DNA from: Neoechinorhynchus agilis
Lineage: Eukaryota > Animalia > Acanthocephala
Assembly: GCA_051530055.1 (NCBI GenBank)
Contig: CM121341.1
Coordinates: 1,302,001-1,366,000 of the forward strand
Length of the DNA stretch: 64,000 bases
Direction: 5' to 3'
The notes beneath the pieces were generated by a model. That model saw only the letters and a list, made by a program, of their open reading frames with translations, searched no databases and was not told where the DNA came from. A program made the translations under genes and the position numbers. Shown here in pieces: positions 1,125 to 35,081 of this stretch. The stretch's first letter is position 1. Every line of letters begins with the position of its first letter.

Positions 1125-3006
1125 TTAATCATCTTCCTCGTCTTCAGACACGTATAATCCCATTGAGGAAAGCATGGTACTGACTGGGTTCACGGTGTAA
1201 CTCTCATTTGCAACACTAAGTGATTCCAACAAATTCTTGAGTGCCTCGCATTCATCCGGATCCTCGAGCTCGGAATCGTTTTCAGAATCCGATGACTGTG
1301 ACGAACTGGTACATAACAACATTTTGTCTATACTCTTTAAAATCTCATTTCCGTCAATAGAAGGACAATCGTTCTTCATACTCCAAGGTTCCTCGGCACC
1401 TTCCATCAATCCACTTCTGCCCTTGACAAAGTCACCGATCGCCTTTGGTATAAGATCAGGTTGAAATCTTACGTTAATGGAAGATGTCACGTATTCTTCA
1501 TGAAGCTCCGGTACAACGCCAAGTTGGTTTACGCAATCCATCTTAGGTGCTTTAAGCCAACCGCAGTACAGCTTGGCGCTAAGTGTTCCCTCTGACGAAG
1601 TACTTTGATAAGTATTCCAAGGAACGGCCGATGCGCTCCGGGCTGCATTGACTTTGGAATATAGCATTTTGTGAATGCATACCATTATTTTTTTCAATTC
1701 CGGTTGCTTGCCCGCTTCAAAAGTGACCGTGCAAGTGTTTGGATTGTCTAAAAAGTGGTGGCATATTGACGACAGAGAAATTTTATTCTGTTGAATCTCG
1801 TTTGCCATTTTTACAGGGCATGTGATTTCAAACGATTTCGAACAGCATCTCGGATCTGTGTATTTGAATATTTTTGCTTTTATATTAAAAGGGAATCGAT
1901 TATTAAAAGGTATTGAGCAAGCAGTTGATCTTTTTCAGATTAAAATTTGATAATGTTATTTATACAACTAACTAGAATTGCTCTTGGAATGAAATTTTGA
2001 ACATCAGCCTTTCAAGCCTGTCAAACAAACAAAGTAGAATGAGATATCGCGAATTGAGCATGCCGTCATGGACAGCGAAGAAGTTAATTCGATCATGTGA
2101 TAAATGAACTTTTCCTTTCTCAAAAATCAAACAGATATTTTATAGCTTTGAGATCCATGGGCGATTATCGTTAAACTTTCTAAGTCAAAAAATTCTTAAA
2201 CGACGTAACGACATTCAACTATTAAAGAGAAATCGTTTGGTAGGACAAAAAGATGTAATAAAATGGCAAGATGATTTTCTCTGAGATCTAAATCAATTCT
2301 CCTTTTTCACAGTCCTGAACACTTTCCTTCATTTCGGTGGCGTTATCAGAAACATGTTTATGAAACTCCTTAACAACTGTTTTATCTCTTACCAAATGTA
2401 TCTTTCCATTAGCGACGAAAATCCTGTCATCGATATCGTCAACCAAATCTTCTTCATCTAGGAAATAGGCGCACTCAACCAATAAGAATTGACAACCTTC
2501 GGCTGGATTAATTATTCGTATCACACATTGGTTTTGTGCACTAAAATCGAATAATATTTTCGTGAGCATCCATTGGTCGTCTATATTGACAGGTTGTGTT
2601 GCAAGATCGGATCACATTTCCAGACGAAAAATACATAGTAGACGAATTTAATAGGTTTTACATTTTTTTCCCTGAATCTGAATCAATTTTACGGTTTCGA
2701 ATGAGGACTATGCACATCGCACACCCTAATTAACATTTGATATCACTTTTAAAATTGACTAAAGAGTCATAAATAATACAAAAAAGCAAAATCTTAACGC
2801 AAAACACAGCCTGTCAAAAATATGCAATCGTCTACGATCTCGTACTTTTTCATCGTGATTAAGTTTTCGGTTTTACAAAGGAACTGAGGAAGTCCAAAAT
2901 GACTGTACCATGAGTACGGACATTCGCGAACAGCTTTATTCAGTGAGTCACTCAGCAATCCACAATTACGCTCAACGAATATCTCACAGAGAACGGCCGA
3001 TTCCAT
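1125..3006 (-). CDS. ECD: Ecdysoneless/hSGT1 homolog, 3 exons: 3006-2799, 2580-2311, 1855-1125 (~402 aa)
   Basis: GT-AG splicing joins three ORF pieces in frame. HDQWMLTKIL..RIINPAEGCQFLLVECAYFL..DRIFVANGKIHLV resembles ECD DEWFIVYVI..RIEDNDGEFLLIEAADFL..NRVFFCHGELCII. The C-terminal IGDFVKGRSG..GAE and NPVSTMLSSMG match the SGT1-domain end. Confidence 0.75.
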
Positions 3007-3063
3007 TTTCGAGAATCTAAAATGTAACCAGCGTTTATGGAAAGGGAACATTGACAGAAAATC

Positions 3064-3270
3064 TCATTTGAAAAAAGAATGGACAAAGCTTGACTCTTTA
3101 CTCCTCGAATCGGTGCTCGCTTTTTCTAAACTGTTTCGCCTGCCGATCTCAATGAAGGCAGAAGTAGTTCTCCTTTTGCGTTGAACGTGACTCCAATAAC
3201 TAACGCCAATTGCTATTGAACATGTGAACGCCATAGAAGTGAACAGGACAACCCTGGACGCAGTTGACAT
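3064..3270 (-). CDS. Small membrane protein, possibly PET117-like (cytochrome c oxidase assembly)
   Basis: 68-aa ORF MSTASRVVLFTSMAFTCSIAIGVSY resembles the PET117 N-terminus MSRSSKVVLGLSVLLTAATVAGVH; the C-terminal match is weak. Ends 57 bp upstream of the ECD ATG on the same strand. Confidence 0.35.
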   Translation of the reverse strand: MSTASRVVLFTSMAFTCSIAIGVSYWSHVQRKRRTTSAFIEIGRRNSLEKASTDSRSKESSFVHSFFK

Positions 3271-3711
3271 TATCCACGAAACCGAAATTAAAAACAGTGT
3301 AAAGCCGCTTAGAAAATGAACTCACTTTTGTCCAAATCGAAAAAGATCTCTGAACGAAGCCTTTATATACGTAAAGATCGGCAAGAACCCAAGTGCAGAA
3401 CAATTATGATGCAACGACCATTCCAATTATGGAATAGAATCTCTAACACTTTTTCAGATATGAATAGGTTTTCAAATCAATATTACATGCGATTTTCGAA
3501 CAAACATGGTGACTCCAGATACAACAATACCATACGTCCGTCAGATAGACAACAACAACAACGGGACGAACGCCTTCAATAAAGGATTTAAAAATACCTC
3601 ACGTCACGTTCGTCAGATAGACAACAACAGCGTTGTGCGCCTTCTACAACTGAGTAAACAAGACCGAACGTTGCATATTAATAGAGACAACAACAGCGTT
3701 GTGCGCGCGCT

Positions 3712-5898
3712 AAAAGACGTAGTGGACGAGACATTACGTCGCCAACGTCAGATACACAACAACATCTTTGTGTTCACGTTCAACGAAGTATTGAACAAGA
3801 CCGAACGCCGCAACGTCACAAAGACAAAAACAGCGTTGTGCGCGCGGTAAAAGACGTAGTGGACGAGACATTACGTCGCAAACGTCAGATACACAACAAC
3901 ATCCTTGTGTTCACGTTTAACGAAGTATTGAACAAGACCGAAAGCCGCTAACGTCAAATAAACAACACAATTGTGCGCACGCTTAGCGACGTAGTGAACA
4001 AAGACCGAACGCCGCAACGTCACAGACAAAAACAGCGTTGTGCGCGCGGTAAAAGACGACGAGACATTACGTCGCAAACGTCAGATACACAACAACATCC
4101 ACGTGTTCACGTTTAACGAAGAATTGAACAAGACCGAACGTCGCTAACGTCAAATAAACAACAATCGAGTTGTGCGCACGCTTAGCGACGTAGTGAACAA
4201 GACCAGACGCCGCAACGTCACAGAGACAAAAGCAGCGTTGTGCGCGCTAAAAGACGTAGTTGGACGAGACATTACGTCGCAAACGTCAGATACACAACAA
4301 CATCCTTGTGTTCACGTTTAACGAAGTATTGAATAAGACCGAACGCCGCTAGCGTCAAATAAACAACAATCGAGTTGTGCGCACGCTTAGCGACGTAGTG
4401 AACAAGACCGAACGCCGCAACGTCACAGAGACAAAAACAGCGTTGTGCGCGCGCTGAAAGACGTAGTGGACGAGACATTGCGTCGCAAACGTCAGATACA
4501 CAACAACATCCACGTGTTCACGTTTAACGAAGTATTGAACAAGACCGAACGCCGCTAACATCAAATAAACAACAATCGAGTTGTGCGCACGCCTAGCGAC
4601 GTAGTGAACAAGACCGAACGCCGCAACGTCACAGAGACAAAAACAGCGTTGTGCGCGTGCTAACAGACGTAGTGGACGAGACATTACGTCGCAAACGTCA
4701 GATACACAACAACATCCTTGTGTTCACGTTTAACGAAGTATTGAACAAGACCGAACGCCGCTAACGTCAAATAAACAACAATCGAGTTGTGCGCACGCTT
4801 AGCGACGTAGTGAACAAGACCGAACGCCGCAACGTCACAGAGACAAAAACAACGTTGTGCGCGCGCAAAAAAGACGTAGTGGACGAGACATTACGTCGCA
4901 AACGTCAGATACACAACAACATCGTTGTGTTCACGTTTAACGAAGTATTGAACAAGACCGAACGCCGCTAACGTCAAATAAACAACAATCGAGTTGTGCG
5001 CACGCTTAGCGACATGGTGAACAAGACCGAACGCCGCAACGCCACAGAGACAAAAACAGCGTTGTGCGCGCGCTAAAAGACGTAGTGGACGAGACATTAC
5101 GTCGCAAACGTCAGATACACAACAACATCCTTGTGTTCACGTTTAACGAAGTATTGAATAAGACCGAACGCCGCTAGCGTCAAATAAACAACAATCGAGT
5201 TGTGCGCACGCTTAGCGACGTAGTGAACAAGACCGAACGCCGCAACGTCACAGAGACAAAAACAGCGTTGTGCGCGCGCTGAAAGACGTAGTGGACGAGA
5301 CATTGCGTCGCAAACGTCAGATACACAACAACATCCACGTGTTCACGTTTAACGAAGTATTGAACAAGACCGAACGCCGCTAACATCAAATAAACAACAA
5401 TCGAGTAGTGCACACGCTTAGCGACGTAGTGAACAGGACCGAACGCCGCAACGCCACAAAGACAAAAACAGCGTTGTGCGCGCGGTAAAAGACGTAGTGG
5501 ACGAGACATTACGTCGCAAACGTCAGATACACAACAACATCGTTGTGTTCACGTTTAACGAAGTATTGAACAAGACCGGTGCCGCTAACGTCAAATACAA
5601 CAACAATCGAGTTGTGCGCACGCTTAGCGACGTAGTGAACAAGACCCACCGCCGCAACGCCAGAGAAAAATAAAGCGTCAGTGCGTTACTAAAAAAGACG
5701 TAGTGGACGAGACATTACGTCGCAAACGTCAGATACACAACAACATCCTTGTGCTCACGTTTAACGAAGTATTGAACAAGACCGAACGCCGCTAACGTCA
5801 AATAAACAACAATCGAGTTGTGCGCACGCTTAGCGACGTAGTGAACAAGACCGAACGCCGCAACGTCACAGAGACAAAAACAGCGTTGTGCGCGCGCT
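3712..5898 (+). repeat. Tandem array of a 206-bp unit (3 x ~69-bp monomers), ~10-11 units; degenerate monomers extend left to ~3530
   Basis: Recurring AAAAGACGTAGTGGACGAGACATTACGTCGC every ~206 bp; internal monomers of 69+69+68 bp align to each other. Confidence 0.95.
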
Positions 5899-8215
5899 TT
5901 CGCAAAACGAGCTACGTAGAATGTATTGAAAGATGAGATTATTGATTGGCCCTATCACAAGTCTTCGTACGCAAATTTGACATTTTACCTTAATGTTTTC
6001 TAAATTTGTATTTAACGACTTCGTAAACGAAAATAAGAACATAAGTTTTGCACAAAATAGGTCCTATAATTTATTATCAGCAGGACGCTTTGCACTAGAT
6101 TTTCGATGCATGAACTTAAAAGGTCATCAATATGGTTCATGGTTTCTTTTTCTTCGGGAACAGAGAAATAAAAAGTGTTTTTGCAAACACTTTGCCCTTG
6201 AACAATATGAAATTTTTCAAATGCTACGAATATAATTTTGATGAACGTAACACAAGAAATGAAATTGAGCGAATATTCTCAAATTTCTTACATATTTATG
6301 TTTATACTCCATTGCAAATAAGCGTTTTATTAAAAAATCAGTAAAATTTGTTTCTCTTATAAAATTTTTTTTCACCTAACCGGTTAAAAATTTCGTCATA
6401 CTTTAATACTAAAACGATTGAGAACCCTAATCACTTTCGAAATAAAGGGCAATGACTGCGGAATTTACGACCCTTTTTGGCCAACACTGGAGATTCTTAT
6501 ATGTTAAAACAAAGCATAATTTACATCGCATTTTTATTTTATTAATTTATCGTATCATTTTAATCTTAGCTGACAATGAATTTTTAACTGCTTTCAATTT
6601 TCCGTCAGATTGTTTGAATCCTTAGCTTGCTAGCTTATGTTCTAAAAATATTGTTTTTAAGAATGCTTCATTAATCTCATATAACTGTGAACATATTTTA
6701 ATCCTTGAGATGTTGCTAAAGTAGAACTTGCAAGCGTCAAGCATTCAAATTAAAGTCGTAGATTCTCCATTAAATTCAGAAGAGATACAGGAAAACTCAA
6801 TGCATAAATTATATTCGTAATGTCATGTTTCCATAAAATGAACTTCCAAGACACTATTTAAGAAATAATGTCGCAATATTCTCACAAAACATTTTAGCAT
6901 GAAAAGTGGTGCCAAAAAGCATCAATTGGAAATCGATTATTCGTGCAATTATATTGTTGGCTTTGGTTACAATTAGTTTTAAGGTGTGCATCGTAACTCT
7001 CATTAAACCTAGAAAGGCATGAAACAAAAATAAAATAGAAATTGTGTCGAACGGATTTGATTTGAAACAATTTTCCTAGAAAAACGAATCGTTCGATCAA
7101 TTTGATTAACACAATTATAAAATTCAGCCAGTAAGAAAGTATTACGGCTTCGCATTAGCTATTTATTTGGTCTTATTGAGTTTCACATGGCCTCAAAATA
7201 GTATAAACGTTTTGTATTTTCGCTTACTGAAACCACACTCATTTGAAATTTCAGTAGAAATATTATTGGCGCATGAAGCATTAAATACTTCGCGGCCGCC
7301 AATGAGATCAAAGAAGCGTTGCAAGCACTGACAATTAAATTTTAATAGTTAACTTTCTGCTATGTAATTTATTCAAAGAAAAAAATTCGATTGTTCCTTG
7401 CGTTGCGCCTTAATCCTTAACTTTGCAAGTAAGGCAAATATAAACGCAAGCTAGGCGAGGCCAATACATGGCACGAAAAAATAGTTAGAAAAATCGTTCA
7501 GTAACATTGACATTCAGAGTCAAATACACAAAAGTTTGTCATACAAAAAACCGAATAGCACGGTACAAAATCGGGTTTTTCGCTTTGCAGTGATCCTACG
7601 GTAAAAACCACTTGTACTGAATTTGAAGGAAATTTACAATTGCGTAAAATTTTTTATTTTCGAATACTGTTCCGATCAAAAAAAATTTGCATGTCTTTTT
7701 AAAAGCAAAATTTTGTTTTATGAATAATGCGACTGGAAAATCAAGTAGTATTTCACAAGGCTAACGTCCAAAGCAAATAATATTTTGCATTACAGAAGGT
7801 TGTTGGGTAGAAAACAAGCTGTTAAAAAAGGTAGTATTTTAATTTCCTAAACGAACATAACCGGCTTTCAAAAGTTCAAACTTTTTATGTTCTTTAACGC
7901 CCGTTAATTTACAATATTACTAGCTTTTGTTTTGCAAAACATTTGCTCATTACAAAGTCGTGACACACGAAAAGATTAACACTTGCATATTCTAAAGGGA
8001 GAAAACATTGTGGAAAACACAACCAAGGAGCTCCCACGAAACTGTATTAGCGATGTGTACAAAACAAGCTCATTCGTCAAATCATTGTTTCTAAGCCATA
8101 GGTATATATATGCGCTCTGAAAAATCCCGGATCATTCGTCTTAGTCAAGATAGAACGCGACACTTTTATTAAATTTCCGAATTCTATTCATTAAACCAAA
8201 CATTTAGTTTCACCA

Positions 8216-8971
8216 ATGGATACCGCAGTATATGACATTCTTCGATGCCTCCTTGACCGAGTGGAAAATCTGCAACAAAATCCAGGCTCCGTAGTCGATC
8301 CTTCAAACGTTCGCATACCGGCGAGTTCTCATGTAACAGGGAGATCAGGGCAACAAATTGGAGCGAGGGATTCAAATGATAGTCGACTCAATCCACCAGC
8401 AAATCAAAATGAATTGGCCGATCTTCCTGGTAATCGCAATGATTCACCGAGAATTACAAACCAGTTTCCTGCCAGTGTTCCAGCTCCACAAGTGAATGTA
8501 ATGAACGAGCTTATGGCTAGCATGAGATCAGTCGCTCCAATAATCGCTGCTTCCCTTCCAGCGTTATTTGATTTTGTGAATCGATCTTCGGACACTGCTC
8601 AAAACAATGATCAAAGAATAGCTTCTACGGCGACGCAAAACGCTCAACGATTAATTGGACGAAATGTGCCCAGAATTGAACAACCATCAGGATACAGTGA
8701 ACAATCCTGGCTTGTAAAAGAGCTTGACAACATGATTCGACGGGAAGCTACAAATTACAATAACGCCGGGATCCTTGGACTTGAAATTGTCAATGAGTTT
8801 TTACATTCACAACGCGGCTTAGAAAACATTCCTTCGCGTTTGCTTAAAAGCAAAACAGGAAAACCTTGTCTTCTTTGTGGCACCAATGAATGTGTTTCCT
8901 GGTATTACAAACAAGAAAAAGTCTTGTGTGCCAAATGTGCAAATTCCCTCTTCAAAACGGCCGAAGATTAA
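8216..8971 (+). CDS. Lineage-specific protein with C-terminal GATA-like C4 zinc finger (copy A); frameshifted extension to 9169 encodes a second degenerate finger
   Basis: 251-aa ORF ending CLLC-x16-CAKC. A probable 5'UTR intron (AG|GTATAT at ~8101 to CATTTAG at ~8207) precedes the ATG. Confidence 0.55.
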   Translation: MDTAVYDILRCLLDRVENLQQNPGSVVDPSNVRIPASSHVTGRSGQQIGARDSNDSRLNPPANQNELADLPGNRNDSPRITNQFPASVPAPQVNVMNELMASMRSVAPIIAASLPALFDFVNRSSDTAQNNDQRIASTATQNAQRLIGRNVPRIEQPSGYSEQSWLVKELDNMIRREATNYNNAGILGLEIVNEFLHSQRGLENIPSRLLKSKTGKPCLLCGTNECVSWYYKQEKVLCAKCANSLFKTAED

Positions 8972-9331
8972 AATAAAAAGATGGTGGTAATCGCGGTCGA
9001 AATGCAAACACCGAATACATATCGGCTTGTCAGAGTTCTCCAAAGTATCGAAAGCAAAGCAACGAGACAATCAGCTGCAAAAGATTCTATGGAACGAAAA
9101 GTTCTTGGTATCGCTGTTATAATCTTCTTTTTGTGCACGAATTGTCCACCTCAAGTTGCATATGAATAAAGAACTTTTATTATGTTATTCTCGAACTTAC
9201 GATTTATCGATATGTGCTGTAAGAATTCTTTTACCCAATTTATCAACGAAAAAGTCGAAGAATATTGAACGTGGCCGATTGAAATTAAAGTAGAATAATT
9301 TCCCTAGCAACGGTTACTGATTCAATTTTAA

Positions 9332-9833
9332 ATGCATTGTCGTCCTTTTTTAGGCGTAATTGCAAATTTGAGAAAAAATGATGTTGAAAGCATGCACAGT
9401 AAAGCGCATCTTCTTGGACGACGTATCATGTTGAATATTTATAAAAATTTAATTTATTCAACAAGAAAAGTGAATTTTAGGAAAATTCACATTCATCGAG
9501 AATATTCTGATATTACCGCTTTAATGGTAAAATCAGCAACAAAAAAAGAACTTGAAAAGGTTGGATTACTTTAACCAATCAGCATCATGTCCTCGATTAA
9601 AGGATCTTTTAAAGGAAGCTAAAATATTAAAGAAGCTTGACCACTTTAGTGTTTGTGTATTTGACAGCAGTGCAATAGTCGATGGACGATTAATACTTTC
9701 ATATTATCCAATCGGGTGGCCATTGAGTCTTATTTTGGTGGATTCTATGATTAGCGTACCACCATCAATTTTGCGAAATTTTACATTTCAAATAGCTGAT
9801 GGTCTTCATTATCTTCATTCAAAAGAAATAATT
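9332..9833 (+). pseudogene. Receptor-tyrosine-kinase-like catalytic fragment (subdomains I-VIa), truncated just before HRD
   Basis: LLGRRIMLNIYK; KSATKKELEK|DLLKEAKILKKLDH after a 43-nt GT-AG intron (9560-9602); FQIADGLHYLHSKEII, then an abrupt switch to RTE sequence. Confidence 0.55.
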
Positions 9834-12090
9834 AGTGAGCTTTCCAACTGGTCTCCTGCACTCCCGCTATGCCGATCCTTCTCATCAACTATTTCTCGAC
9901 TCCTTCCCGTCATCGATCCCACATTTAGCGTTGCTATTCTTAGGTCACTTGTGTAGAATAATTTCTTTAGCCGAAACCGTCCATGCCTCGGTAGCCTTTG
10001 ATGATTTAACACAAGCTCCAGGCGAAGAACTTGCGCGTCGCAGCCTTAGTGCTTTGGTTGATTCGGTTGTTGGTTGTCATTTGGATCAAAATTTGGCAAG
10101 AATTTTACAGCTGGATGCCCTTCATGACGCCAACCCTCCTCCTTTTTCAGCCGGGCTTGGGATTGTCCTTGGCGAGCAAAAAACCTAACACATTTCACAA
10201 GAGGTGCGCTCAAATCTGTTCCTCCGAACTCCTGCCCTTAGAAGAACTAACTTCTCTAATCTTTCAAAAGCACTCAAAAGCGCTTTCATTATCCTCCGCT
10301 CGCGTCGCCCCAACATTTTCCATCCTTCATTTCCTCGCACAAACCTCTACCTTCGATCCTTCTTCCCCGCTGCTTAATCCTCCAAATGCAAATTGATTCG
10401 AAGGAAGGAATGGAAGACTTCATATTCTCACGCTTTTCCCTCTTTCGAGAGGTTGCGGGTCCTAATATTACATCTATTTGGTGAAAAATGTTGAGTCCAA
10501 TTTAACTTCGATCTTGATTTACACAATCCACCCAACGCTTCTTGAGTCTTCCTCTGCGCCGCCTTTCCAATATCCTCTATGCTTATATGCCTTCTCTCGC
10601 TATTCATAACCTTATTGAACAACCGCAATCTTCTTTGAGCTATCAATTCGGTGCATCGGTTATCTAGCATCCTTCTAATATCCTCGTTTCTTTTCCTATC
10701 CCTGAATGTGAAGCCAGCTGCCCATCTCAACATCCTCATTTCATTCGATTCTAATCGACTGAGGTCGTCTTTCTTGGTCGTCCACGTCTCTGCGGCGTAC
10801 AACATTGTTGGTCTCACTACAGTCTCGAATACTCCGATCCTTTTGGCTTTAGCCCGATCCTTTTATCACATACAGAATACGGTTGACATTTTTATCCAGT
10901 TGTGCCATCGGCTTTGTATTCGGGGAGTTATTTTAGGTTTGAGAGAGTTGGCCATACTGACCTTGCTACCAAGATATTGAACTGACGCTTTTAATGTTAA
11001 TTGTTTGGCATCTCATTCTAGATCCTCCGAACCTGTATTCGCTCTGCTTACTTTGATTCCGTTGCTTTCCAATCTCTCACGCCACCCTTCCAGTCTTTGC
11101 ATAGCCACTTGGCGTTTTTCCGTTGTGACTATCAAGTCATCATCGTACTTTAAAGTCCACGGCGGCATTGAATCGTTTTGCTGGGATCCAAATACGTTCA
11201 TGATCGTAATGAATAGGAACGGACTGAGGACAGATCCCTGATGTAATCCAACTGAGACCCCAAAATAATTTGTTTCGATCACACTGCATCGGACACTTAT
11301 GTATGATCCGTCCTACATTGTCCTGATAGTTTGTACGTACTGTTTGGGGCAATTTTTCTTTCTAAGGCAGTTCCATATCAGGTCTCTCGGCACTGTGTCG
11401 TATTCCTTTTCAAAGTCGACGAATGTACTGTATAGCGGCTTCTGCTTTTCATCGAACCTCTTGTACAATTGTCTAATTAAGGAAATCTCATCCGTAGTGC
11501 TTCCTCGACCTGGCATGAAGCCAAGCTGTTGCTCGTCTCTCCCATGCTTCATTGTATGACTGATCAATTTTATACCCCGGTAGCTGCTACATTGTTCAAC
11601 CTCGCCTTTCTGTTTATAGATCGGAGTCACTGTACTTTTCTGCCAAGCTTCCGGCATTTTGGCAATGTCTGATATCCTCCTGAATTGGATGGTAAGCACT
11701 CGAATACCGAATCCGCCCAACGATTTCCAGCCTTCGATCGGAATGTCGTCCAGTCCTGCACTTTTACCGGTTTTCATGCGACGATGCTGTACTGCGAACT
11801 CTTTGTAGGAGAACGGTCGAATTAGATTCGCGTTTGGTGGTGCTTGATCATAAGGCTGGCGAGGATTTTTTGTATTATTGAGTTTGTCGAAATACTCTCG
11901 CCATCTTTGAAGGATATAGTTTTCGCTTCTTAGGTTTTTCTCGACGAGTCTTTAATTCTTTTTACGACTGGAATATCCTAAGATCTTTTGTCGTGAATTC
12001 GGGCGATCTTAAATATCATTTGCACACCTTCATCGTTTTCAAGTGCCTCGTATATTTCTCGATTCGATTCCTTCTTGGAAAGCACATTGG
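9834..12090 (-). mobile_element. Degenerate RTE-clade non-LTR retrotransposon, permuted (RT and 3' end, followed by 5' end and APE start)
   Basis: MKTGKSAGLDDIP..IYKQKGE..SYRGIKLISHTMK..QLGFMPGRGSTTD..FVDFEKEYD (RT); GLHQGSVLSP; RPTMLYAAETW..EMRMLRW (C-term); LRIATLNVGSMTGRSRE (APE N-term). Stops and frameshifts present. Confidence 0.85.
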
Positions 12091-12571
12091 CTGGAAAATC
12101 AAGTAGTATTTTACAAGGCTAACATCAAAAGAAAATAATATTTTGCATTGCAAAAGCTTGTTAGCTAGAAAACACGCTGTTCAAAACGGTAGTATTTTAA
12201 TTTCTTAAACGAACATAACCGGCCTTCAAAAGTTCAAACTTTTTATGTTCTTTTACGCCTGTTAATTTACAATATTACTAGCTTTTGTTTTGCAAAACAT
12301 TTGCTGATTACAAAGTCGTGACAGACAAAAAGATTAACACTTGCATATTCTAAAGGGAGAAAACATTGTGGAAAACGCAACCAAGGAGCTACCATGAAAC
12401 TGTATGAGCGATGTGTAGCAAACAAGCTCATTCGTCAAATCATTGTTTCTAAGCCATAGGTATATATGCGCTCTGAAAATTCCCGGATCATTCGTCTTAG
12501 TCAAGATAGAACGCGACACTTTTATAAAATTTCCGAATTCTATTCATTAAACCGAACATTTAGTTTCACGA

Positions 12572-14391: not shown

Positions 14392-14970
14392 CGAATTCTA
14401 TAGCGGTTCCATCTTTCACCGCACCGGTTGCACATTTTATAGCGGTAACGCGAGCCGAGGAAGATAAAACTGAACATTTTATTGATCATCAAACAGCATT
14501 TAGCCTCGAAGCGTCATCAATTAAAACCTATGATTTGGAAAACCTTAAATCTACAGCAACGATTCAAGCGAGTCTTTGATTGGCTAGGGAGTCGCGAGAG
14601 CGAGGTGATGATCAAAGTGCAGAATCAAAAAAACAGGAATAATGCAATCAACATTTTTATCCATTGATCCCCAAACAAAATAAATTGTACTGCATTTTTA
14701 TTGAAAAAAGCATGGATTCTTTATAATCTCATTTGTATTTTTTGTGATTTACAGAGTTGTTGCGCTCGATGATTTAATAGGAGCGATTTTTTGTGAGCGA
14801 TGAAAAGCTACGGTTGGGCTATAAATAATTCTGACAGCTGCTCGTCTTCACAAAATTCGCAAGTAGCTTTAGATGTTCAAACAATGAATTTATTCTCCAA
14901 TAATATCGATTGGGCATACTACACTGCTGAATTTAGAAAACCGAAATAGTATTTGCAATTTATTAGCAAG

Positions 14971-20916: not shown

Positions 20917-21398
20917 TCGTGAAACTAAATGTTCGGTTTAATGAATAGAATTCGGAAATTTTATAAAAGTGTCGCGTTCTATCTTGACTAAGACGAATGA
21001 TCCGGGAATTTTCAGAGCGCATATATACCTATGGCTTAGAAACAATGATTTGACGAATGAGCTTGTTTGCTACACATCGCTCATACAGTTTCATGGTAGC
21101 TCCTTGGTTGCGTTTTCCACAATGTTTTCTCCCTTTAGAATATGCAAGTGTTAATCTTTTTGTCTGTCACGACTTTGTAATCAGCAAATGTTTTGCAAAA
21201 CAAAAAACCCATAATATTGTAAATTAACAGGCGTAAAAGAACATAAAAAGTTAAAATTTTTGAAGGCCGGGTTTGTTTGTTTAAGAAATTAAAATACTAC
21301 CGTTTTGAACAGCGTGTTTTCTAGCTAACAAGCTTTTGCAATGCAAAATATTATTTTCTTTTGATGTTAGCCTTGTAAAATACTACTTGATTTTCCAG

Positions 21399-23650: not shown

Positions 23651-24152
23651 AATTATTTCTTTTGAATGAAGATAATGAAGACCATCAGCTATTTGAAACG
23701 TAAAATTTCGCAAAATTGATGGTGGTACGCTAATCATAGAATCCACCAAAATAAGACTCAATGGCCACCCGATTGGATAATATGAAAGTATTAATCGTCC
23801 ATCGACTATTGCACTGCTGTCAAATACACAAACACTAAAGTGGTCAAGCTTCTTTAATATTTTAGCTTCCTTTAAAAGATCCTTTAATCGAGGACATGAT
23901 GCTGATTGGTTAAAGTAATCCAACCTTTTCAAGTTCTTTTTTTGTTGCTGATTTTACCATTAAAGCGGTAATATCAGAATATTCTCGATGAATGTGAATT
24001 TTCCTAAAATTCACTTTTCTTGTTGAATAAATTAAATTTTTATAAATATTCAACATGATACGTCGTCCAAGAAGATGCGCTTTACTGTGCATGCTTTCAA
24101 CATCATTTTTTCTCAAATTTGCAATTACGCCTAAAAAAGGACGACAATGCAT
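23651..24152 (-). pseudogene. Inverted copy of the RTK-like kinase fragment
   Basis: Mirror of 9332-9833; identical ORF translations. Confidence 0.55.
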
Positions 24153-24512
24153 TTAAAATTGAATCAGTAACCGTTGCTAGGGAAATTATTCTACTTTAAT
24201 TTCAATCGGCCACGTTCAATATTCTTCGACTTTTTCGTTGATAAATTGGGTAAAAGAATTCTTACAGCACATATCGATAAATCGTAAGTTCGAAAATAAC
24301 ATAATAAAAGTTCTTTATTCATATGCAACTTGAGGTGGACAATTCGTGCACAAAAAGAAGATTATAACAGCGATACCAAGAACTTTTCGTTCCATAGAAT
24401 CTTTTGCAGCTGATTGTCTCGTTGCTTTGCTTTCGATACTTTGGAGAACTCTGACAAGCCGATATGTATTCGGTGTTTGCATTTCGACCGCGATTACCAC
24501 CATCTTTTTATT

Positions 24513-25268
24513 TTAATCTTCGGCCGTTTTGAAGAGGGAATTTGCACATTTGGCACACAAGACTTTTTCTTGTTTGTAATACCAGGAAACACATTCATTG
24601 GTGCCACAAAGAAGACAAGGTTTTCCTGTTTTGCTTTTAAGCAAACGCGAAGGAATGTTTTCTAAGCCGCGTTGTGAATGTAAAAACTCATTGACAATTT
24701 CAAGTCCAAGGATCCCGGCGTTATTGTAATTTGTAGCTTCCCGTCGAATCATGTTGTCAAGCTCTTTTACAAGCCAGGATTGTTCACTGTATCCTGATGG
24801 TTGTTCAATTCTGGGCACATTTCGTCCAATTAATCGTTGAGCGTTTTGCGTCGCCGTAGAAGCTATTCTTTGATCATTGTTTTGAGCAGTGTCCGAAGAT
24901 CGATTCACAAAATCAAATAACGCTGGAAGGGAAGCAGCGATTATTGGAGCGACTGATCTCATGCTAGCCATAAGCTCGTTCATTACATTCACTTGTGGAG
25001 CTGGAACACTGGCAGGAAACTGGTTTGTAATTCTCGGTGAATCATTGCGATTACCAGGAAGATCGGCCAATTCATTTTGATTTGCTGGTGGATTGAGTCG
25101 ACTATCATTTGAATCCCTCGCTCCAATTTGTTGCCCTGATCTCCCTGTTACATGAGAACTCGCCGGTATGCGAACGTTTGAAGGATCGACTACGGAGCCT
25201 GGATATTGTTGCAGATTTTCCACTCGGTCAAGGAGGCATCGAAGAATGTCATATACTGCGGGATCCAT
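24513..25268 (-). CDS. Inverted copy of GATA-like zinc-finger gene A
   Basis: 251-aa ORF differing from 8216-8971 at two residues (T3P, N22Y). Confidence 0.55.
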   Translation of the reverse strand: MDPAVYDILRCLLDRVENLQQYPGSVVDPSNVRIPASSHVTGRSGQQIGARDSNDSRLNPPANQNELADLPGNRNDSPRITNQFPASVPAPQVNVMNELMASMRSVAPIIAASLPALFDFVNRSSDTAQNNDQRIASTATQNAQRLIGRNVPRIEQPSGYSEQSWLVKELDNMIRREATNYNNAGILGLEIVNEFLHSQRGLENIPSRLLKSKTGKPCLLCGTNECVSWYYKQEKVLCAKCANSLFKTAED

Positions 25269-27566
25269 TGGTGAAACTAAATGTTTGGTTTAATGAATAG
25301 AATTCGGAAATTTAATAAAAGTGTCGCGTTCTATCTTGACTAAGACGAATGATCCGGGATTTTTCAGAGCGCATATATATACCTATGGCTTAGAAACAAT
25401 GATTTGACGAATGAGCTTGTTTTGTACACATCGCTAATACAGTTTCGTGGGAGCTCCTTGGTTGTGTTTTCCACAATGTTTTCTTCCTTTAGAATATGCA
25501 AGTGTTAATCTTTTCGTGTGTCACGACTTTGTAACGAGCAAATGTTTTGCAAAACAAAAGCTAGTAATATTGTAAATTAACGGGCGTTAAAGAACATAAA
25601 AAGTTTGAACTTTTGAAAGCCGGTTATGTTCGTTTAGGAAATTAAAATACTACCTTTTTTAACAGCTTGTATTCTACCCAACAACCTTCTGTAATGCAAA
25701 ATATTATTTGCTTTGGACGTTAGCCTTGTGAAATACTACTTGATTTTCCAGTCGCATTATTCATAAAACAAAATTTTGCTTTTAAAAAGACATGCAAATT
25801 TTTTTTGATCGGAACAGTATTCGAAAATAAAAAATTTTACGCAATTGTAAATTTCCTTCAAATTCAGTACAAGTGGTTTTTACCGTAGGATCACTGCAAA
25901 GCGAAAAACCCGATTTTGTTCCGTGCTATTCGGTTTTTTGTATGACAAACTTTTGTGTATTTGACTCTGAATGTCAATGTTACTGAACGATTTTTCTAAC
26001 TATTTTTTCGTGCCATGTATTGGCCTCGCCTAGCTTGCGTTTATATTTGCCTTACTTGCAAAGTTAAGGATTAAGGCGCAACGCAAGGAACAATCGAATT
26101 TTTTTTCTTTGAATAAATTACATAGCAGAAAGTTAACTATTAAAATTTAATTGTCAGTGCTTGCAACGCTTCTTTGATCTCATTGGCGGCCGCGAAGTAT
26201 TTAATGCTTCATGCGCCAATAATATTTCTACTGAAATTTCAAATGAGTGTGGTTTCAGTAAGCGAAAATACAAAACGTTTATACTATTTTGAGGCCATGT
26301 GAAACTCAATAAGACCAAATAAATAGCTAATGCGAAGCCGTAATACTTTCTTACTGGCTGAATTGTATAATTGTGTTAATCAAATTGATCGAACGATTCG
26401 TTTTTCTAGGAAAATTGTTTCAAATCAAATCCGTTCGACACAATTTCTATTTTATTTTTGTTTCATGCCTTTCTAGGTTTAATGAGAGTTACGATGCACA
26501 CCATAAAACTAATTGTAACCAAAGCCAACAATATAATTGCACGAATAATCGATTTCCAATTGATGCTTTTTGGCACCACTTTTCATGCTAAAATGTTTTG
26601 TGAGAATATTGCGACATTATTTCTTAAATAGTGTCTTGGAAGTTCATTTTATGGAAACATGACATTACGAATATAATTTATGCATTGAGTTTTCCTGTAT
26701 CTCTTCTGAATTTAATGGAGAATCTACGACTTTAATTTGAATGCTTGACGCTTGCAAGTTCTACTTTAGCAACATCTCAAGGATTAAAATATGTTCACAG
26801 TTATATGAGATTAATGAAGCATTCTTAAAAACAATATTTTTAGAACATAAGCTAGCAAGCTAAGGATTCAAACAATCTGACGGAAAATTGAAAGCAATTA
26901 AAAGCGAAGATTAAAATGATACGATAAATTAATAAAATAAAAATGCGATGAAAATTATGCTTTGTTTTAACATATAAGAATCTCCAGTGTTGGCCAAAAA
27001 CGGTCGTAAATTCCGCAGTCATTGCCCTTTATTTCGAAAGTGATTAGGGTTCTCAATCGTTTTAGTATTAAAGTATGACGAAATTTTTAACCGGTTAGGT
27101 GAAAAAAATTTTATAAGAGAAACAAATTTTACTGATTTTTTAATAAAACGCTTATTTGCAATGGAGTATAAACATAAATATGCAAGAAATTTGGGAATGT
27201 TCGCTCAATTTCATTTCTTGTGATACGTTCATCAAAATTATATTCGTAGCATTTGAAAAATTTCATATTGTTCAAGGGCAAAGTGTTTGCAAAAACACTT
27301 TTTATTTCTCTGTTCCCGAAGAAAAAGAAACCATGAACCATATTGATGACCTTTTAAGTTCATGCATCGAAAATCTAGTGCAAAGCGTCCTGCTGATAAT
27401 AAATTATAGGACCTATTTTGTGCAAAACTTATATTCTTATTTTCGTTTACGAAGTCGTTAAATACAAATTTAGAAAACATTAAGGTAAAATGTCAAATTT
27501 GCGTACGAAGACTTGTGATAGGGCCAATCAATAATCTCATCTTTCAATACATTCTACGTAGCTCGT

Positions 27567-28677
27567 CTCGCTGAGAATTACTTATAAAGACCATCGAGAG
27601 AATTTTTGTTAACGTGAAATAGTGATTGCGATTTTTTTTGCGTAAAATTAAAAAAACCATCACAACGGAATTTTCTGAATTCCAATGAAGCTACGCAGCA
27701 ATTACGGTCTCACATTTCAAAAAAATAAATTCTATATTTCAGTCAATGGCACAAAACAATGTTGGCATAAAATCGATATCGGAAATAAAAGCATCCAAGT
27801 TTACAACTAAAAATCATGCATTTATACTGGCAAGCATGAATTTAATAACAAGAACGGCGATATTCGAGCGACCAATTTTAGCTTGAATTATCGCATTGTA
27901 ACTTTTTTACATCCTTGTTTTTGAGACGATTTTTATATCTTTAAAATCGATCGAAACGGGTTTAGTTGATGAATTGATCGTTTACTTTTTGGTCCCAAAA
28001 GCGATTACACGAATTATTCGTGAAAATAACAAAAAGGCATTACGGTAAAAACTAAAACTGAATGAACTTAGCAAACGCGAGTGTCCAAAGATGAAATTTA
28101 TTTTTACTATAATAAAAAAATGTCACTTAGACAAACATTTCTTAGTTCGTTCAATGCGCATGCAGTAACCCAAGCGTGGTTTTATCTGAGACCAAATTTT
28201 TAAATCAAAGAATTAATTCTTCGTGGCGTCGAATGACTTTTTGTATCCCTTCTAAAAAACGATTGAATGTATTCAGCTTCGTTAAAATTTGTTTAGATTT
28301 CGTTTTCCTATTCCTGAAACGCAAAGAAGGTCCTCGTGATCGAGTTTGCGAGTGAGAAAGCAATTGATCTTTGCAGAAAAAACCCCAATTCCACCAACAA
28401 TTGATTTCCAATTGACCCTTCTTGGAACCACTTTTCCGGATACAATGTTTTTAGACATTATTCAAGCATCTGTTAGACTGGTTGAATGTACCGTTGATTC
28501 TATAGTCGAGGACGTTGACCTTTCAGTTGTTGCAGTGCAAATCAAAAATTCATTGACTTTAAACGCTTCCAAGATTGTAGATTCACTTAAAATAATAAAA
28601 GATATGATTTATAATTTAATTCTTCTGATACATTTCCAGGTGATTCGCCCTCCACACTTCAGGGGTTAAAGTTGAAG
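27567..28677. other. 1.1-kb insertion unique to the right arm, flanked by 17-bp direct repeats; contains an exon-like fragment
   Basis: CATTCTACGTAGCTCGT at 27550-27566 and 28678-28694; only one copy (5907-5923, reverse complement) and no insert in the left arm. Confidence 0.85.
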
Positions 28678-28702
28678 CATTCTACGTAGCTCGTTTTGCG
28701 AA

Positions 28703-31700
28703 AGCGCGCGCACAACGCTGTTTTTGTCTCTGTGACGTTGCGGCGTTCGGTCTTGTTCACTACGTCGCTAAGCGTGCGCACAACTCGATTGTTTTTTATT
28801 TGACGATAGCGGCGTTCGGTCTTGTTCAATACTTCGTTTAACGTGAACACAAGGATGTTGTTGTGTATCTGACGTTTGCGACGTAATGTCTCGTCCACTA
28901 CGTCTTTTAGCGCGCGCACAACGCTGTTTTTGTCTATGTGACGTTGCTGCGTTCTATCTTGTTCACTAAGTCGCTAAGCGTGCGCACAACTCGATTGTTG
29001 TTTATTTGACGTTAGCGGCGTTCGGTCTTGTTCAATACTTCGTTAAACGTGAACACGTGGATGTTGTTGTGTATCTGACGTTTGCGACGTAATGTCTCGT
29101 CCACTACGTCTTTTAGCGCGCGCACAACGCTGTTTTTGTCTCTGTGGCGTTGCGGCGTTCGGTCCTGTTCACTACGTCGCTAAGCGTGCGCACAACTAGA
29201 TTGTTGTTTATTTGACGTTAGCGGCGTTCGGTTTTGTTCAATACTTCGTTAAACGTGAACACAAGGATGTTGTTGTGAATCTGACGTTTGCGACGTTATG
29301 TCTCGTCCACTAAGTCTTTTAGCGCGCAAGACGCCGTTTTTGTCTCTGTGATGTTGCGGCGTTCGGTCTTGTTCACTACGTCGCTAGGCGTGCGCACAAC
29401 TCGATTGTTGTTTATTTGACGTTAGCGGCGTTCGGTCTTGTTCAATACTTCGTTAAACGTGAACACAAGGATGCTGTTGTGTATCTGACGTTTGCGACGT
29501 AATGTCTCGTCCAACTACGTCTTTTTGCGTGCGCACAACGCTGTTTTTGTCTCCGTGACGTTGCGGCGTTCGAGATAACATTCACGTCGCTAGGCGTGCG
29601 CACAACTCGATTGTTGTTTATTTGACGTTAGCGGCGTTCGGTCTTGTTCAATACTTCGTTAAACGTGAACACAAGGATGTTGTTGTGTATCTGACGTTTG
29701 CGACGTAATGTCTCGTCCACTACGTCACATTAGCGCGCGCACAACGCTGTTTTTGTCTCTGTTCCCGTTGCGGCGTTCGGTCTTGTTCACTACGTCGCTA
29801 AGCGTGCGCACAACTCGATTGTTGTTTATTTGACGTTAGCGGCGTTCGGTCTTGTTCAATACTTCGTTAAACGTGAACACAAGGATGTTGTTGTGTATCT
29901 GACGTTTGCGACGTAATGTCTCGTCCACTACGTCTTTTTGCGCGCACAACGCTGTTTTTGTCTCTGTGGCGTTTCGGCGTTCGGTCTTGTTCAATACTTC
30001 TTTAAACGTGAACACGTGGATGTTGTTGTGTATCTGACGTTTGCGACGTAATGTCTCGTCCACTACGTCTTTTAGCGCGCACACAACGCTGTTATTGTCT
30101 CTGTGACGTTGCGGCGTTCGGTCTTGTTCACTACGTCGCAAAGCGTGCGCACAACTCGATTGTTTTTTATTTGACGTTAGCGGCATTCGGTCTTGTTCAT
30201 TACTTGGTTAAACGTGAACACAAGGATGTTGTTGTGTATCTGACGTTTACGACGTAATGTCTCGTCCACTACGTCTTTTAGCGCGCGCACAACGCTGTTT
30301 TGTCTCTGTGACGTTGCGGCGTTCGGTCTTGTTCACTACGTCGCTAGGCGTGCGCACAACTCGATTGTTGTTTATTTGACGTTAGCGGCGTTCGGTCTTG
30401 TTCAACACTTCGTTAAACGTGAACACGTGGATGTTGTTGTGTATCTGACGTTTGCGACGTAATGTCTCGTCCACTACGTCTGTTAGCGCGCGCACAACGC
30501 TGTTTTTGTCTCTGTGACGTTGCGGCGTTCGGTCTTGTTCAATACTTCGTTAAACGTGAACACGTGGATGTTGTTGTGTATCTGACGTTTGCGACGTAAT
30601 GTCTCGTCCACTACGTCTTTTAGCGCGCGAACAACGCTGTTTTTGTATCTGCGACGTTGCGGCGTTCGGTCTTGTTCACTGCGTCGCTAAGCGTGCGCAC
30701 AACTCGATTGTTGTTTATTTGACGTTAGCGGCGTTCGGTTTTGTTCAATACTTCGTTAAACGTGAACACAAGGATGTTGTTGTGTATCTGACGTTTGCGA
30801 CGTAATGTCTCGTCCAACTACGTCTGTTAGCGCGAACAACGCTGTTTTTTTGTCTCTGTGACGTTGCGGCGTTCGGTCTTGTTCACTACGTCGCTAAGCG
30901 TGCGCACAACTCGATTGTTGTTTATTTGACGTTAGCGGCTTTCGGTCTTGTTCAATACTTCGTTAAACGTGAACACAAGGATGTTGTTGTGTATCTGACG
31001 TTTGCGACGTAATGTCTCGTCCACTACGTCTTTTAGCGCGCACAACGCTGTTTTGTCTGTGGCGTTGCAGGCGTTCGGTCTTGTTCACCATGTCGCTAAG
31101 CGTGCGCACAACTCGATTGTTGTTTAGGCTGACGTTAGCGGCGTTCGGTCTTGTTCAATACTTCGTTAAACGTGAACACAACGATGTTGTTGTGTATCTG
31201 ACGTTTGCGACGTAATCTCTCGTCCACTACGTCTTTTAGCGCGCGCACAACGCTGTTTTTGTATCTGTGACGTTGCGGCGTTCGGTCTTGTTCACTACGT
31301 CGCTAAGCGTGCGCACAACTCGATTGTTGTTTATTTGACGTTAGCGGCGTTCGGTCTTGTTCAATACTTCGTTAAACGTGAACACAAGGATGTTGTTGTG
31401 TATCTGACGTTTGCGACGTAATGTCTCGTCCACTACTTCTTTTTCGCGCGCGCACAACGCTGTTTTTGTCTCTGTGACGTTGCGGCGTTCGGTCTTGTTC
31501 ACTACGTCGCTAAGCGTGCGCACAACTCGATTGTTGTTTATTTGACGTTAGCGGCTTTCGGTCTTGTTCAATACTTCGTTAAACGTGAACACAACGATGT
31601 TGTTGTGTATCTGACGTTTGCGACGTAATGTCTCGTCCACTACGTCTTTTACCGCGCGCACAACGCTGTTTTTGTCTTTGTGACGTTGCGGCGTTCGGTC

Positions 31701-33507
31701 CTGTTCACTACGTCGCTAAGCGTGTGCACTACTCGATTGTTGTTTATTTGATGTTAGCGGCGTTCGGTCTTGTTCAATACTTCGTTAAACGTGAACACGT
31801 GGATGTTGTTGTGTATCTGACGTTTGCGACGCAATGTCTCGTCCACTACGTCTTTCAGCGCGCGCACAACGCTGTTTTTGTCTCTGTGACGTTGCGGCGT
31901 TCGGTCTTGTTCACTACGTCGCTAAGCGTGCGCACAACTCGATTGTTGTTTATTTGACGCTAGCGGCGTTCGGTCTTATTCAATACTTCGTTAAACGTGA
32001 ACACAAGGATGTTGTTGTGTATCTGACGTTTGCGACGTAATGTCTCGTCCACTACGTCTTTTAGCGCGCGCACAACGCTGTTTTTGTCTCTGTGGCGTTG
32101 CGGCGTTCGGTCTTGTTCACCATGTCGCTAAGCGTGCGCACAACTCGATTGTTGTTTATTTGACGTTAGCGGCGTTCGGTCTTGTTCAATACTTCGTTAA
32201 ACGTGAACACAACGATGTTGTTGTGTATCTGACGTTTGCGACGTAATGTCTCGTCCACTACGTCTTTTTTGCGCGCGCACAACGCTGTTTTTGTCTCTGT
32301 GACGTTGCGGCGTTCGGTCTTGTTCACTACGTCGCTAAGCGTGCGCACAACTCGATTGTTGTTTCTTTGACGTTAGCGGCGTTCGGTCTTGTTCAATACT
32401 TCGTTAAACGTGAACACAAGGATGTTGTTGTGTATCTGACATTTGCGACGTAATGTCTCGTCCACTACGTCTTTTTTGCGCGCGCACAACGCTGTTTTTG
32501 TCTCTGTGACGTTGCGGCGTTCGGTCTTGTTCACCACGTCGCTAAGCGTGCGCACAACTCGATTGTTGTTTATTTGACGTTAGCGGCTTTCGGTCTTATT
32601 CAATACTTCGTTAAACGTGAACACAACGATGTTGTTGTGTATCTGACGTTTGCGACGTAATGTCTCGTCCACAACGTCTTTTACCGCGCGCACAACGCTG
32701 TTTTTGTCTTTGTGACGTTGCGGCGTTCGGTCCTGTTCACTACGTCGCTAAGCGTGTGCACTACTCGATTGTTGTTTATTTGATGTTAGCGGGGCGTTCG
32801 GTCTTGTCCAATACTTCGTTAAACGTGAACACGTGGATGTTGTTGTGTATCTGACGTTTGCGACGCAATGTCTCGTCCACTACGTCTTTCGGCGCGCGCA
32901 CAACGCTGTTTTTGTCTCTGTGACGTTGCGGCGTTCGGTCTTGTTCACTACGTCGCTAAGCGTGCGCACAACTCGATTGTTGTTTATTTGACGCTAGCGG
33001 CGTTCGGTCTTATTCAATACTTCGTTAAACGTGAACACAAGGATGTTGTTGTGTATCTGACGTTTGCGACGTAATGTCTCGTCCAACTACGTCTTTTAGC
33101 GCGCACAACGCTGCTTTTGTCTCTGTGACGTTGCGGCGTCTGGTCTTGTTCACTACGTCGCTAAGCGTGCGCACAACTCGATTGTTGTTTATTTGACGTT
33201 AGCGACGTTCGGTCTTGTTCAATTCTTCGTTAAACGTGAACACGTGGATGTTGTTGTGTATCTGACGTTTGCGACGTAATGTCTCGTCCACTACGTCTTT
33301 TTGCGCGCGCACAACGCTGTTTTTGTCTCTGTGACGTTGCGGCGTTCGGTCTTGTTAGCTACGTCGCTAAGCGTGCGCACAACTGGATTGTTGTTTATTT
33401 GACGTTAGCGGCTTTCGGTCTTGTTCAATACTTCGTTAAACGTGAACACAAGGATGTTGTTGTGTATCTGACGTTTGCGACGTAATGTCTCGTCCACTAC
33501 GTCTTTT
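28703..33507 (-). repeat. Tandem array of the 206-bp unit, ~23-24 units, some lacking a monomer
   Basis: Reverse complement of the left-arm unit; shortened units at e.g. ~29940-30000 and ~30490-30545. Confidence 0.95.
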
Positions 33508-33948
33508 AGCGCGCGCACAACGCTGTTGTTGTCTCTATTAATATGCAACGTTCGGTCTTGTTTACTCAGTTGTAGAAGGCGCACAACGCTGTTGTTGTCT
33601 ATCTGACGAACGTGACGTGAGGTATTTTTAAATCCTTTATTGAAGGCGTTCGTCCCGTTGTTGTTGTTGTCTATCTGACGGACGTATGGTATTGTTGTAT
33701 CTGGAGTCACCATGTTTGTTCGAAAATCGCATGTAATATTGATTTGAAAACCTATTCATATCTGAAAAAGTGTTAGAGATTCTATTCCATAATTGGAATG
33801 GTCGTTGCATCATAATTGTTCTGCACTTGGGTTCTTGCCGATCTTTACGTATATAAAGGCTTCGTTCAGAGATCTTTTTCGATTTGGACAAAAGTGAGTT
33901 CATTTTCTAAGCGGCTTTACACTGTTTTTAATTTCGGTTTCGTGGATA

Positions 33949-34155
33949 ATGTCAACTGCGTCCAGGGTTGTCCTGTTCACTTCTATGGCGTTCACATGTT
34001 CAATAGCAATTGGCGTTAGTTATTGGAGTCACGTTCAACGCAAAAGGAGAACTACTTCTGCCTTCATTGAGATCGGCAGGCGAAACAGTTTAGAAAAAGC
34101 GAGCACCGATTCGAGGAGTAAAGAGTCAAGCTTTGTCCATTCTTTTTTCAAATGA
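33949..34155 (+). CDS. Duplicated PET117-like small ORF
   Basis: Identical translation to 3064-3270. Confidence 0.3.
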   Translation: MSTASRVVLFTSMAFTCSIAIGVSYWSHVQRKRRTTSAFIEIGRRNSLEKASTDSRSKESSFVHSFFK

Positions 34156-34215
34156 GATTTTCTGTCAATGTTCCCTTTCCATAAACGCTGGTTACATTTT
34201 AGATTCTCGAAAATG

Positions 34216-35033: not shown

Positions 35034-35081
35034 TGATTGTGCGTTGGCGAATCCTGCCCCCGGTGCTTTCGTTACTCATTT

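Follow-up and report, generated by a model that had tools for sequence, protein, structure and literature searches.

A near-identical inverted duplication around a 5.25-kb spacer, within a cluster of nested duplications, in the genome assembly of the acanthocephalan Neoechinorhynchus agilis

Palindromes P1-P8 of the human Y chromosome and the palindromes of the human X chromosome pair arms that are >99% identical around a unique spacer, carry multi-copy, lineage-restricted genes in those arms and lie embedded among other duplications, a configuration with the potential for arm-to-arm conversion and for inversion of the spacer. Here we describe a structure with all of these properties in the acanthocephalan Neoechinorhynchus agilis (assembly GCA_051530055.1, chromosome CM121341.1, 19.4 Mb), located in a stretch of 64,000 bp (positions 1,302,001-1,366,000; the window). 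About 96 kb upstream of the window was examined as well; coordinates are those of the window unless marked "record", which denotes chromosome coordinates. The structure is an instance of an already known type, a near-identical inverted duplication or palindrome of the ampliconic kind, smaller and less identical: its arms measure 11-15 kb, compared with tens of kb to over a Mb in the human palindromes, and share 99.3% identity rather than about 99.97%. In contrast to the human structures, its arms are unequal, through a satellite and a 1.1-kb deletion, and it is known from an assembly alone, with no sign of sex linkage, germline expression or conversion.

Other described systems resemble the locus in part. 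The Foldback (FB) transposons of Drosophila and Galileo-type elements likewise have long inverted arms with tandem subrepeats whose number differs between the arms, but the N. agilis arms are far longer and include retroelement fragments as well as host genes; a clean target-site duplication is lacking, no transposase was found, and the inner ends are truncation points. Rearrangements of the fork stalling and template switching/microhomology-mediated break-induced replication type (FoSTeS/MMBIR), including the duplication-inverted triplication-duplication form (DUP-TRP/INV-DUP), share with it a DNA-level inverted copy near its source, sharp junctions and three copies; one junction may also have a short microhomology (CGGCCG, statistically insecure) and a short filler derived from transposable elements (TEs). 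The DUP-TRP/INV-DUP layout was nevertheless rejected, as the order is third copy (+), left arm (+), right arm (-), with the inverted copy terminal and not between direct copies; the copies also differ in extent. Finally, palindromes have been described in the first assembly (AV13) of Adineta vaga, a member, with N. agilis, of the broader clade Rotifera (including Acanthocephala); as here, that was a draft assembly with more than one haplotype, and arm divergence was in the allelic range (PMC8494291). Unlike in AV13, the N. agilis junctions are gap-free, the flanks are non-allelic on both sides, a 5.25-kb spacer is present and the scale is 5-15 kb.

Comparison of the window with itself yielded the layout below. 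It agreed in all coordinates with a prediction made earlier from the letters of the window (the original prediction), which had described a quasi-palindrome with a 5.25-kb spacer.

3004..14118, plus strand: left arm, 11,115 bp, found by self-comparison; its flanks are continuous in paralogs and it holds the ancestral position
19370..34215, minus strand: right arm, 14,846 bp, found by self-comparison; relocated inverted copy
14119..19369, no strand: spacer, 5,251 bp, not duplicated between the arms, with no counterpart in either arm

Along their unique part (5907-14118 against 27566-19370), the arms were 99.34% identical in an alignment of 8,214 columns with 35 mismatches and 9 gap openings; the differences were scattered along its full length, and chance cannot produce 99% identity over 8 kb. 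The satellite arrays of the two arms differed at 22 of 2,758 positions (99.2% identity, with gaps in multiples of the repeat unit allowed), and the outermost 707 bp (3004-3710 against 34215-33509) showed no differences. Single-nucleotide differences, a small indel and unequal arrays had all been foreseen and were found as the 35 mismatches, an 11-bp indel at 6571-6581 and arrays of 2.3 and 4.9 kb. The homology broke off to the base at both junctions. Judged from these and the following comparisons, the structure is, on balance, probably a genuine, evolutionarily recent inverted segmental duplication made at the DNA level within a duplication hotspot.

The two arms are not equivalent. At its outer end the left arm meets a gene of the ECD/SGT1 family, assigned through a weak Pfam SGT1 match and reading of the open reading frame (ORF), which reads leftwards from 3006; the upstream region of this gene, here called segment P, stops to the base at the start codon (ATG, 3006..3004, minus strand). 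A second ECD copy aligned unbroken through 3004 at 99.85% identity, and two older paralogs (80-89%) of the zinc-finger gene at the inner end aligned unbroken through 14118 as far as 14971, where a retroelement starts. Because the ECD copy and the paralogs cross both left-arm boundaries, the ancestral continuity lies with the left arm and the spacer, and the boundaries of the right arm are novel. The right arm is a relocated copy that breaks sharply at both ends, each of which is a novel junction. These alignments bear out two earlier proposals, that the left arm runs into intact flanks on both ends and that the right arm is the derived copy. The companion proposal, that the right arm abuts truncated retroelements on both sides, held for the outer side, where retroelement debris was found, but not demonstrably for the inner side, which consists of 1.66 kb of unclassified AT-rich DNA. 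The features at these boundaries are as follows.

3004..3519, minus strand: segment P, 516 bp, upstream region of ECD, one end of which is the ECD start codon
33700..34215, plus strand: segment P of the right arm, ending ...CGAAAATG and followed by retroelement debris in place of ECD
34216..35033, minus strand: retroelement patchwork adjoining the right arm, with an RTE-tail-like piece of ~60 nt, an ORF1-like ORF and the start of an apurinic/apyrimidinic (AP) endonuclease
19307..20008, minus strand: truncated zinc-finger gene, 233 amino acids (aa), spanning the inner right junction

Segment P of the right arm continues as ...ATG|ACGGCCGG... and not as ECD. The RTE-tail-like stretch at this outer flank covers about 60 nt (34216-34278), and the start of the AP-endonuclease domain in the patchwork (its first motif) was assigned by motif reading only. 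At the inner junction, the last 20 residues of the truncated zinc-finger product come from spacer DNA. When the joined flanks of the right arm were aligned with the intact RTE-like tail present in the arm, the outer 60 nt aligned well and the inner flank was colinear just downstream; in this test for an empty site, the inner-flank alignment scored 34, a value attained in 30 of 500 shuffles, and a former empty site within an RTE-like tail is thus suggestive only. A motif search for further copies of the tail gave only duplicates of the arm copy, and the one related element examined from another chromosome was truncated before its tail.

The original prediction had taken a 1.1-kb length difference between the arms for an insertion. 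It is instead a deletion from the left arm between 17-bp direct repeats, as the following features show.

27567..28701, minus strand: segment of 1,135 bp, flanked by 17-bp direct repeats, that the right arm retains and the left arm has lost
5891..5923, minus strand: deletion scar in the left arm, with one CATTCTACGTAGCTCGT copy left and 1,128 bp missing relative to the right arm

The repeat CATTCTACGTAGCTCGT brackets the right-arm segment, at 27550 and 28678, and occurs as a single copy at 5907 in the left arm. The first ~450 bp of the segment also lie beside the same unique sequence in a third copy of the arm upstream of the window (designated U) and in the older paralogs; because these copies carry it, the segment is ancestral and the left arm lost it.

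Across the 5.2 kb common to the three copies, 11 sites were private to the left arm and 11 to the right arm, their private states being mostly derived relative to the outgroup paralogs, and 32 sites grouped left and right against U. A fold-back read chimera, argued against from the outset, is ruled out by these substitutions, by the 1.1 kb of ancestral DNA that the right arm keeps and the left arm lacks, and by the spacer, whose 5,251 bp are asymmetric and join without a break to the left arm alone. Ten of the arm differences are clustered within 72 bp (12211-12282 against 21206-21278). There the left arm agrees with an intra-arm paralog (7853-7924) and the right arm has private states, a pattern that suggests a tract of ectopic gene conversion between paralogs.

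Because upstream DNA, satellite and retroelement fragments were all included, copying of the arm took place at the DNA level and was not RNA-mediated. The source would have been a module of ~11-15 kb made up of the ECD upstream region, the satellite, a Cys-rich gene, a kinase fragment with its retroelement and most of a second family gene, and this module would have been copied in reversed orientation into DNA about 5 kb downstream. One breakpoint coincides with the start codon of ECD; the other falls in the C-terminal portion of the zinc-finger ORF, leaving 20 codons to the end of the truncated product. Break repair or replicative template switching may have formed the junctions, with TE-derived filler at the outer one. 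The hexamer CGGCCG is present on both sides of the outer junction, and neither microhomology nor templated insertion was seen at the inner junction. In direct orientation, ACGGCCG occurs in both outer flanks of the 31-kb structure (2993-2999 and 34216-34222); by a rough estimate, a 7-mer match in two 12-nt flanks has a chance of a few in a thousand, and the repeat could be a microhomology, an imperfect target duplication or a product of chance. Changes after copying amount to about 0.2% private substitutions per copy, the 1.1-kb loss from the left arm and a change in the number of satellite units. Such a repeat could give rise to gene conversion, inversion of the spacer or hairpin RNA, and this analysis provided no evidence of function for the structure.

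The palindrome is the youngest layer of a cluster, at least 150 kb in extent, of nested, mostly inverted, gene-sized duplications. The earlier picture of a two-copy duplication stood as far as both arms are concerned but missed three features just outside the window: a third copy of ~99% identity, another ECD gene and another palindrome. The third copy, U (record 1,293,232-1,298,578), lies 3.4 kb to the left of the window, covers arm positions 5907-11105, has the same orientation as the left arm, and shares 98.9% identity with the left arm and 98.0-98.6% with the right arm. A 4.6-kb block consisting of P, ECD and a piece of an RTE fragment is present twice in inverted orientation (1.2283-1.2329 Mb and 1.2973-1.3055 Mb of the record) at 99.4-99.85% identity, with the same 227-aa C-terminal ORF in both copies. 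The beta-tubulin gene is also duplicated inverted (99.26% identity), as is a 5.4-kb piece with a family gene of 686-aa type (mostly 98.6-99.8%, with a ~0.7-kb stretch at ~95%). The second palindrome (record 1,213,829-1,228,816) lies at a distance of 77 kb and likewise stops at the start codon of ECD; over the outer 2.6 kb its arms share 99.36% identity.

Segment P has four copies of at least 99.4% identity (window 3004-3519; record 1,213,829, 1,228,300 and 1,335,700), whose flanks form a 2x2 pattern: the inner side is an RTE endonuclease fragment or satellite, and the ATG side is ECD or transposon debris (an RTE tail at the right arm, a gypsy fragment at the second palindrome). Each palindrome has ECD at the end of one arm and, at the end of the other, a breakpoint common to both palindromes, ...CGAAAATG(AC). 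The recurring boundaries of P may reflect either one old event that was later copied or a fragile or recombination site at P itself.

Close to the outer patchwork, 0.8 kb from the right arm, positions 35034-36456 hold a perfect 465-bp inverted repeat (35034-35498 and 35992-36456, 100% identity, 493 bp apart). The repeat consists of two 5′-truncated Penelope-like copies, head to head, an inverted arrangement that Penelope elements typically show (PMC3846280). Within it, a 310-aa ORF gave a weak match to a GIY-YIG endonuclease (NCBIfam, E = 0.003). A third, older fragment of the upstream region of the family gene (36457-37024, 83-85% identity), in the orientation of the right arm, begins exactly at the end of the Penelope-like sequence.

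Several observations weigh against a genuine duplication, beginning with the assembly itself. The N. agilis genome (46.2 Mb, three main chromosomes) was assembled with MaSuRCA in hybrid mode with Flye. The data were 4.2 Gb of Oxford Nanopore (ONT) R9.4 reads of about 50 pooled worms, Illumina reads of these worms and of one female, and very limited HiFi data for two individual females; purge_dups, instaGRAAL, manual curation and TGS-GapCloser were applied afterwards (PMC12690905). The assembly reads certainly contain several haplotypes, a pooled hybrid assembly is a setting in which haplotypes or near-identical repeats can be mis-resolved, and the pooling gives the haplotype caveat more weight than the original prediction supposed. 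A structure of 5-15 kb points to the contig assembler and not to the Hi-C scaffolder, as instaGRAAL moves much larger bins. The junctions are known from the assembly sequence alone, and the ORF specific to the inner junction had no match among proteins of independent assemblies or transcriptomes. Furthermore, alleles could also reach an arm divergence of 0.4-1%, and the observed 0.4-0.8% is compatible with allelic variation; three single-base indels between the arms fall in homopolymers, as ONT errors would; the many pairs of at least 98.6% identity within 150 kb are unusual for a 46-Mb genome; and the palindromes published for the related rotifer A. vaga proved artefactual, produced when phased haplotypes were scaffolded (PMC8494291). 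The right arm may be another haplotype, or a repeat copy resolved wrongly, that was taken from the ~50-worm pool and threaded into the contig in reverse, the true genome having one copy fewer or another arrangement, and we give this explanation an appreciable but clearly minor probability. It would require two independent false joins because neither flank of the right arm is allelic to that of the left arm, and the asymmetric 5.25-kb spacer does not fit a fold-back read. There were no undetermined bases (Ns) in the roughly 155 kb examined (a 159-kb span with two short gaps unsampled), and the larger duplicates lack the colinearity expected of haplotypes joined in this way, reading ECD-tubulin on one side and tubulin-ECD on the mirrored side; with the non-allelic flanks, this makes two haplotypes joined head to head unlikely. 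In addition, P stops at one and the same ATG-side position in another palindrome of different structure, which would be hard to obtain from arbitrary contig ends, and duplication is low genome-wide (BUSCO, 1.8-2.7%; PMC12690905).

A recent duplication also has to be weighed against biological alternatives. An old palindrome anchored at the ECD start codon could have been duplicated whole into two mirror-image palindromes (record 1213829..1228816 and the one studied), with the arms kept alike by conversion. The shared ECD end and ...CGAAAATG(AC) breakpoint would fit such a history, as would the 99.3-99.4% identity within palindromes compared with 95-97% for gene A sequences between them, and the 10-difference cluster (12211-12282), in which the left arm agrees with the paralog inside the arm, resembles a conversion tract, though one from that paralog. 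Recent duplication accounts equally well for the within- and between-palindrome identities and, for the three sequences compared, for the pattern of left arm, right arm and third copy. Moreover, the sequences differ beyond the shared breakpoint (RTE tail versus gypsy fragment), the inner part of the second palindrome is only 96% identical between its arms, and the two loci share 99.85% identity in ECD and its flanks, a sign of recent copying; we regard the older origin as rather improbable. A stronger version, in which P is a site-specific break or recombination hotspot and the two ECD-anchored palindromes make up an old, conversion-maintained ampliconic region in a 46-Mb genome, comparable to the palindromes of primate sex chromosomes, is improbable. 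Very improbable is an origin from a mobile element, whether as a giant transposon of Foldback type whose arms are built of satellite or through capture of host DNA by Penelope. It would account for the tandem subrepeats of unequal length in the inverted arms, the sharp outer ends, the 7-nt direct repeat ACGGCCG in both outer flanks and the Penelope-like element 0.8 kb from the right arm, as Penelope elements form inverted structures and copy host genes (PMC3846280). Yet the flank repeat is flush with the right end but 4 nt off the left end, CGGCCG is itself palindromic, the second palindrome has no flank repeat, no transposase was found, truncation of a longer ancestral sequence explains the inner arm ends, and the third copy with its 16-kb array stands outside any inverted pair. 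Foldback-like copies at unrelated sites were rejected, since the pairwise (2x2) sharing of P flanks indicates duplication with recombination and not transposition. Penelope capture, which would leave the captured DNA between pseudo-long terminal repeats and a target-site duplication (PMC3846280), was likewise rejected: there is no flush target duplication, and Penelope-like sequence is confined to 35034-36456, with nothing similar on the inner side.

If the recent segmental duplication is real, the locus represents a 150-kb hotspot that has copied a Cys-rich family, a kinase, ECD and beta-tubulin, mostly inverted, in one of the smallest animal genomes, and offers a natural series for how palindromes form and decay; it would also place a duplicated, possibly redundant ECD gene beside recombinogenic repeats. 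If it is an artefact, a region is mis-resolved in the only chromosome-level Neoechinorhynchus assembly and the gene counts of these families would be inflated. Either way, the region needs checking before synteny or gene families are interpreted.

From the outside inward, each arm consists of P, the satellite, a 251-aa Cys-rich gene, a kinase fragment with a retroelement, and a broken gene of 686-aa type. Apart from P, the elements are as follows.

3611..5899, plus strand: 69-bp satellite of the left arm, 2.3 kb, with a 206-bp higher-order unit
28702..33608, minus strand: 69-bp satellite of the right arm, 4.9 kb, with a 206-bp higher-order unit
8216..8971, plus strand: family gene A of the left arm, lineage-specific, encoding a Cys-rich protein of 251 aa whose C-terminal motif is C-x2-C...C-x2-C
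24513..25268, minus strand: family gene A of the right arm, with 2 amino-acid differences from the left copy
9153..9833, plus strand: protein-kinase gene fragment, 94% identical to a paralog with Pfam Pkinase
9840..12088, minus strand: 5′-truncated non-LTR (long terminal repeat) retroelement fragment, RTE-like, with the tail motif GGAGGGTTGGCGTCA
12588..14579, plus strand: broken family gene of 686-aa type, annotated as 122-aa and 350-aa models, spanning the inner boundary at 14118

The satellite is longest outside the palindrome: an array of 16 kb built of the same 69-bp unit (record ~1,276,750-1,292,754) precedes U and exceeds both arm arrays, its left-hand units being more diverged (about 78-80% identity to arm units). 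Gene A of the left arm has the same sequence as that of U. No relatives of the family genes outside N. agilis were detected among 1.8 billion representative proteins, and the 251-aa protein had no match among the solved structures of the PDB. The RTE-like element interrupts the kinase fragment at 9833/9840, and its conserved tail motif GGAGGGTTGGCGTCA lies at 10113-10139. What had been called the zinc-finger ORF (13456-14391) is the last ORF of the broken 686-aa-type gene and gave a weak RING-like match in the PDB comparison (E = 0.013). Rfam and tRNA scans of the arms detected no Rfam families or tRNAs.

The spacer is divided into three parts.

14119-14970, no strand: ancestral continuation of the zinc-finger gene
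14971-17705, minus strand: 5′-truncated non-LTR retroelement
17706-19369, no strand: unclassified AT-rich DNA with a 77-bp relic of a kinase gene

A second copy of the spacer retroelement lies at 47099-50014 in the same orientation (90.8% identity). The element has a reverse transcriptase (RT) motif (…MDDATLGG…) and a C-terminal RPDG…D.T motif, and by motif it reads like a non-LTR element of the type with a restriction-like endonuclease (RLE). Homologs of its RT piece were found only in N. agilis, on at least two chromosomes, and none was labelled by Pfam; the retroelement proteins had no matches in the PDB.

Adjoining P of the second palindrome is a Ty3/gypsy-type element (record ~1,209,700-1,213,830) with gag CCHC, protease, RT and integrase, the last of which carries DDE-transposase matches (NCBIfam integrase matches). 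A search for LTRs around it found none, and the element is therefore considered a fragment. The two ECD genes (window 1-3519 and record ~1,228,300-1,231,736) are inverted relative to each other, and the annotation splits both into two models, one of 110 aa or 152 aa and one of 227 aa; the gene may be reduced, mis-annotated or decaying.

Further along the window, long intron-poor ORFs read like a regulatory subunit of cAMP-dependent kinase (45044-46048), eIF3 subunit B (53775-55898) and an importin (60026-63749). The members of the tubulin pair lie about 98 kb apart (window 50823-52441 and 52997-53684; record 1,253,665-1,256,541), and DNA upstream of the gene belongs to the same inverted duplication (98.1%). 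Homology ends within the last codons of tubulin, and in GenBank the other copy is modelled as a fusion of 700 aa extending beyond this point. The tubulin gene of the window is surrounded by tRNA-Met (50315-50388) and tRNA-Glu (52800-52871); tubulin and both tRNAs were confirmed by dedicated tools.

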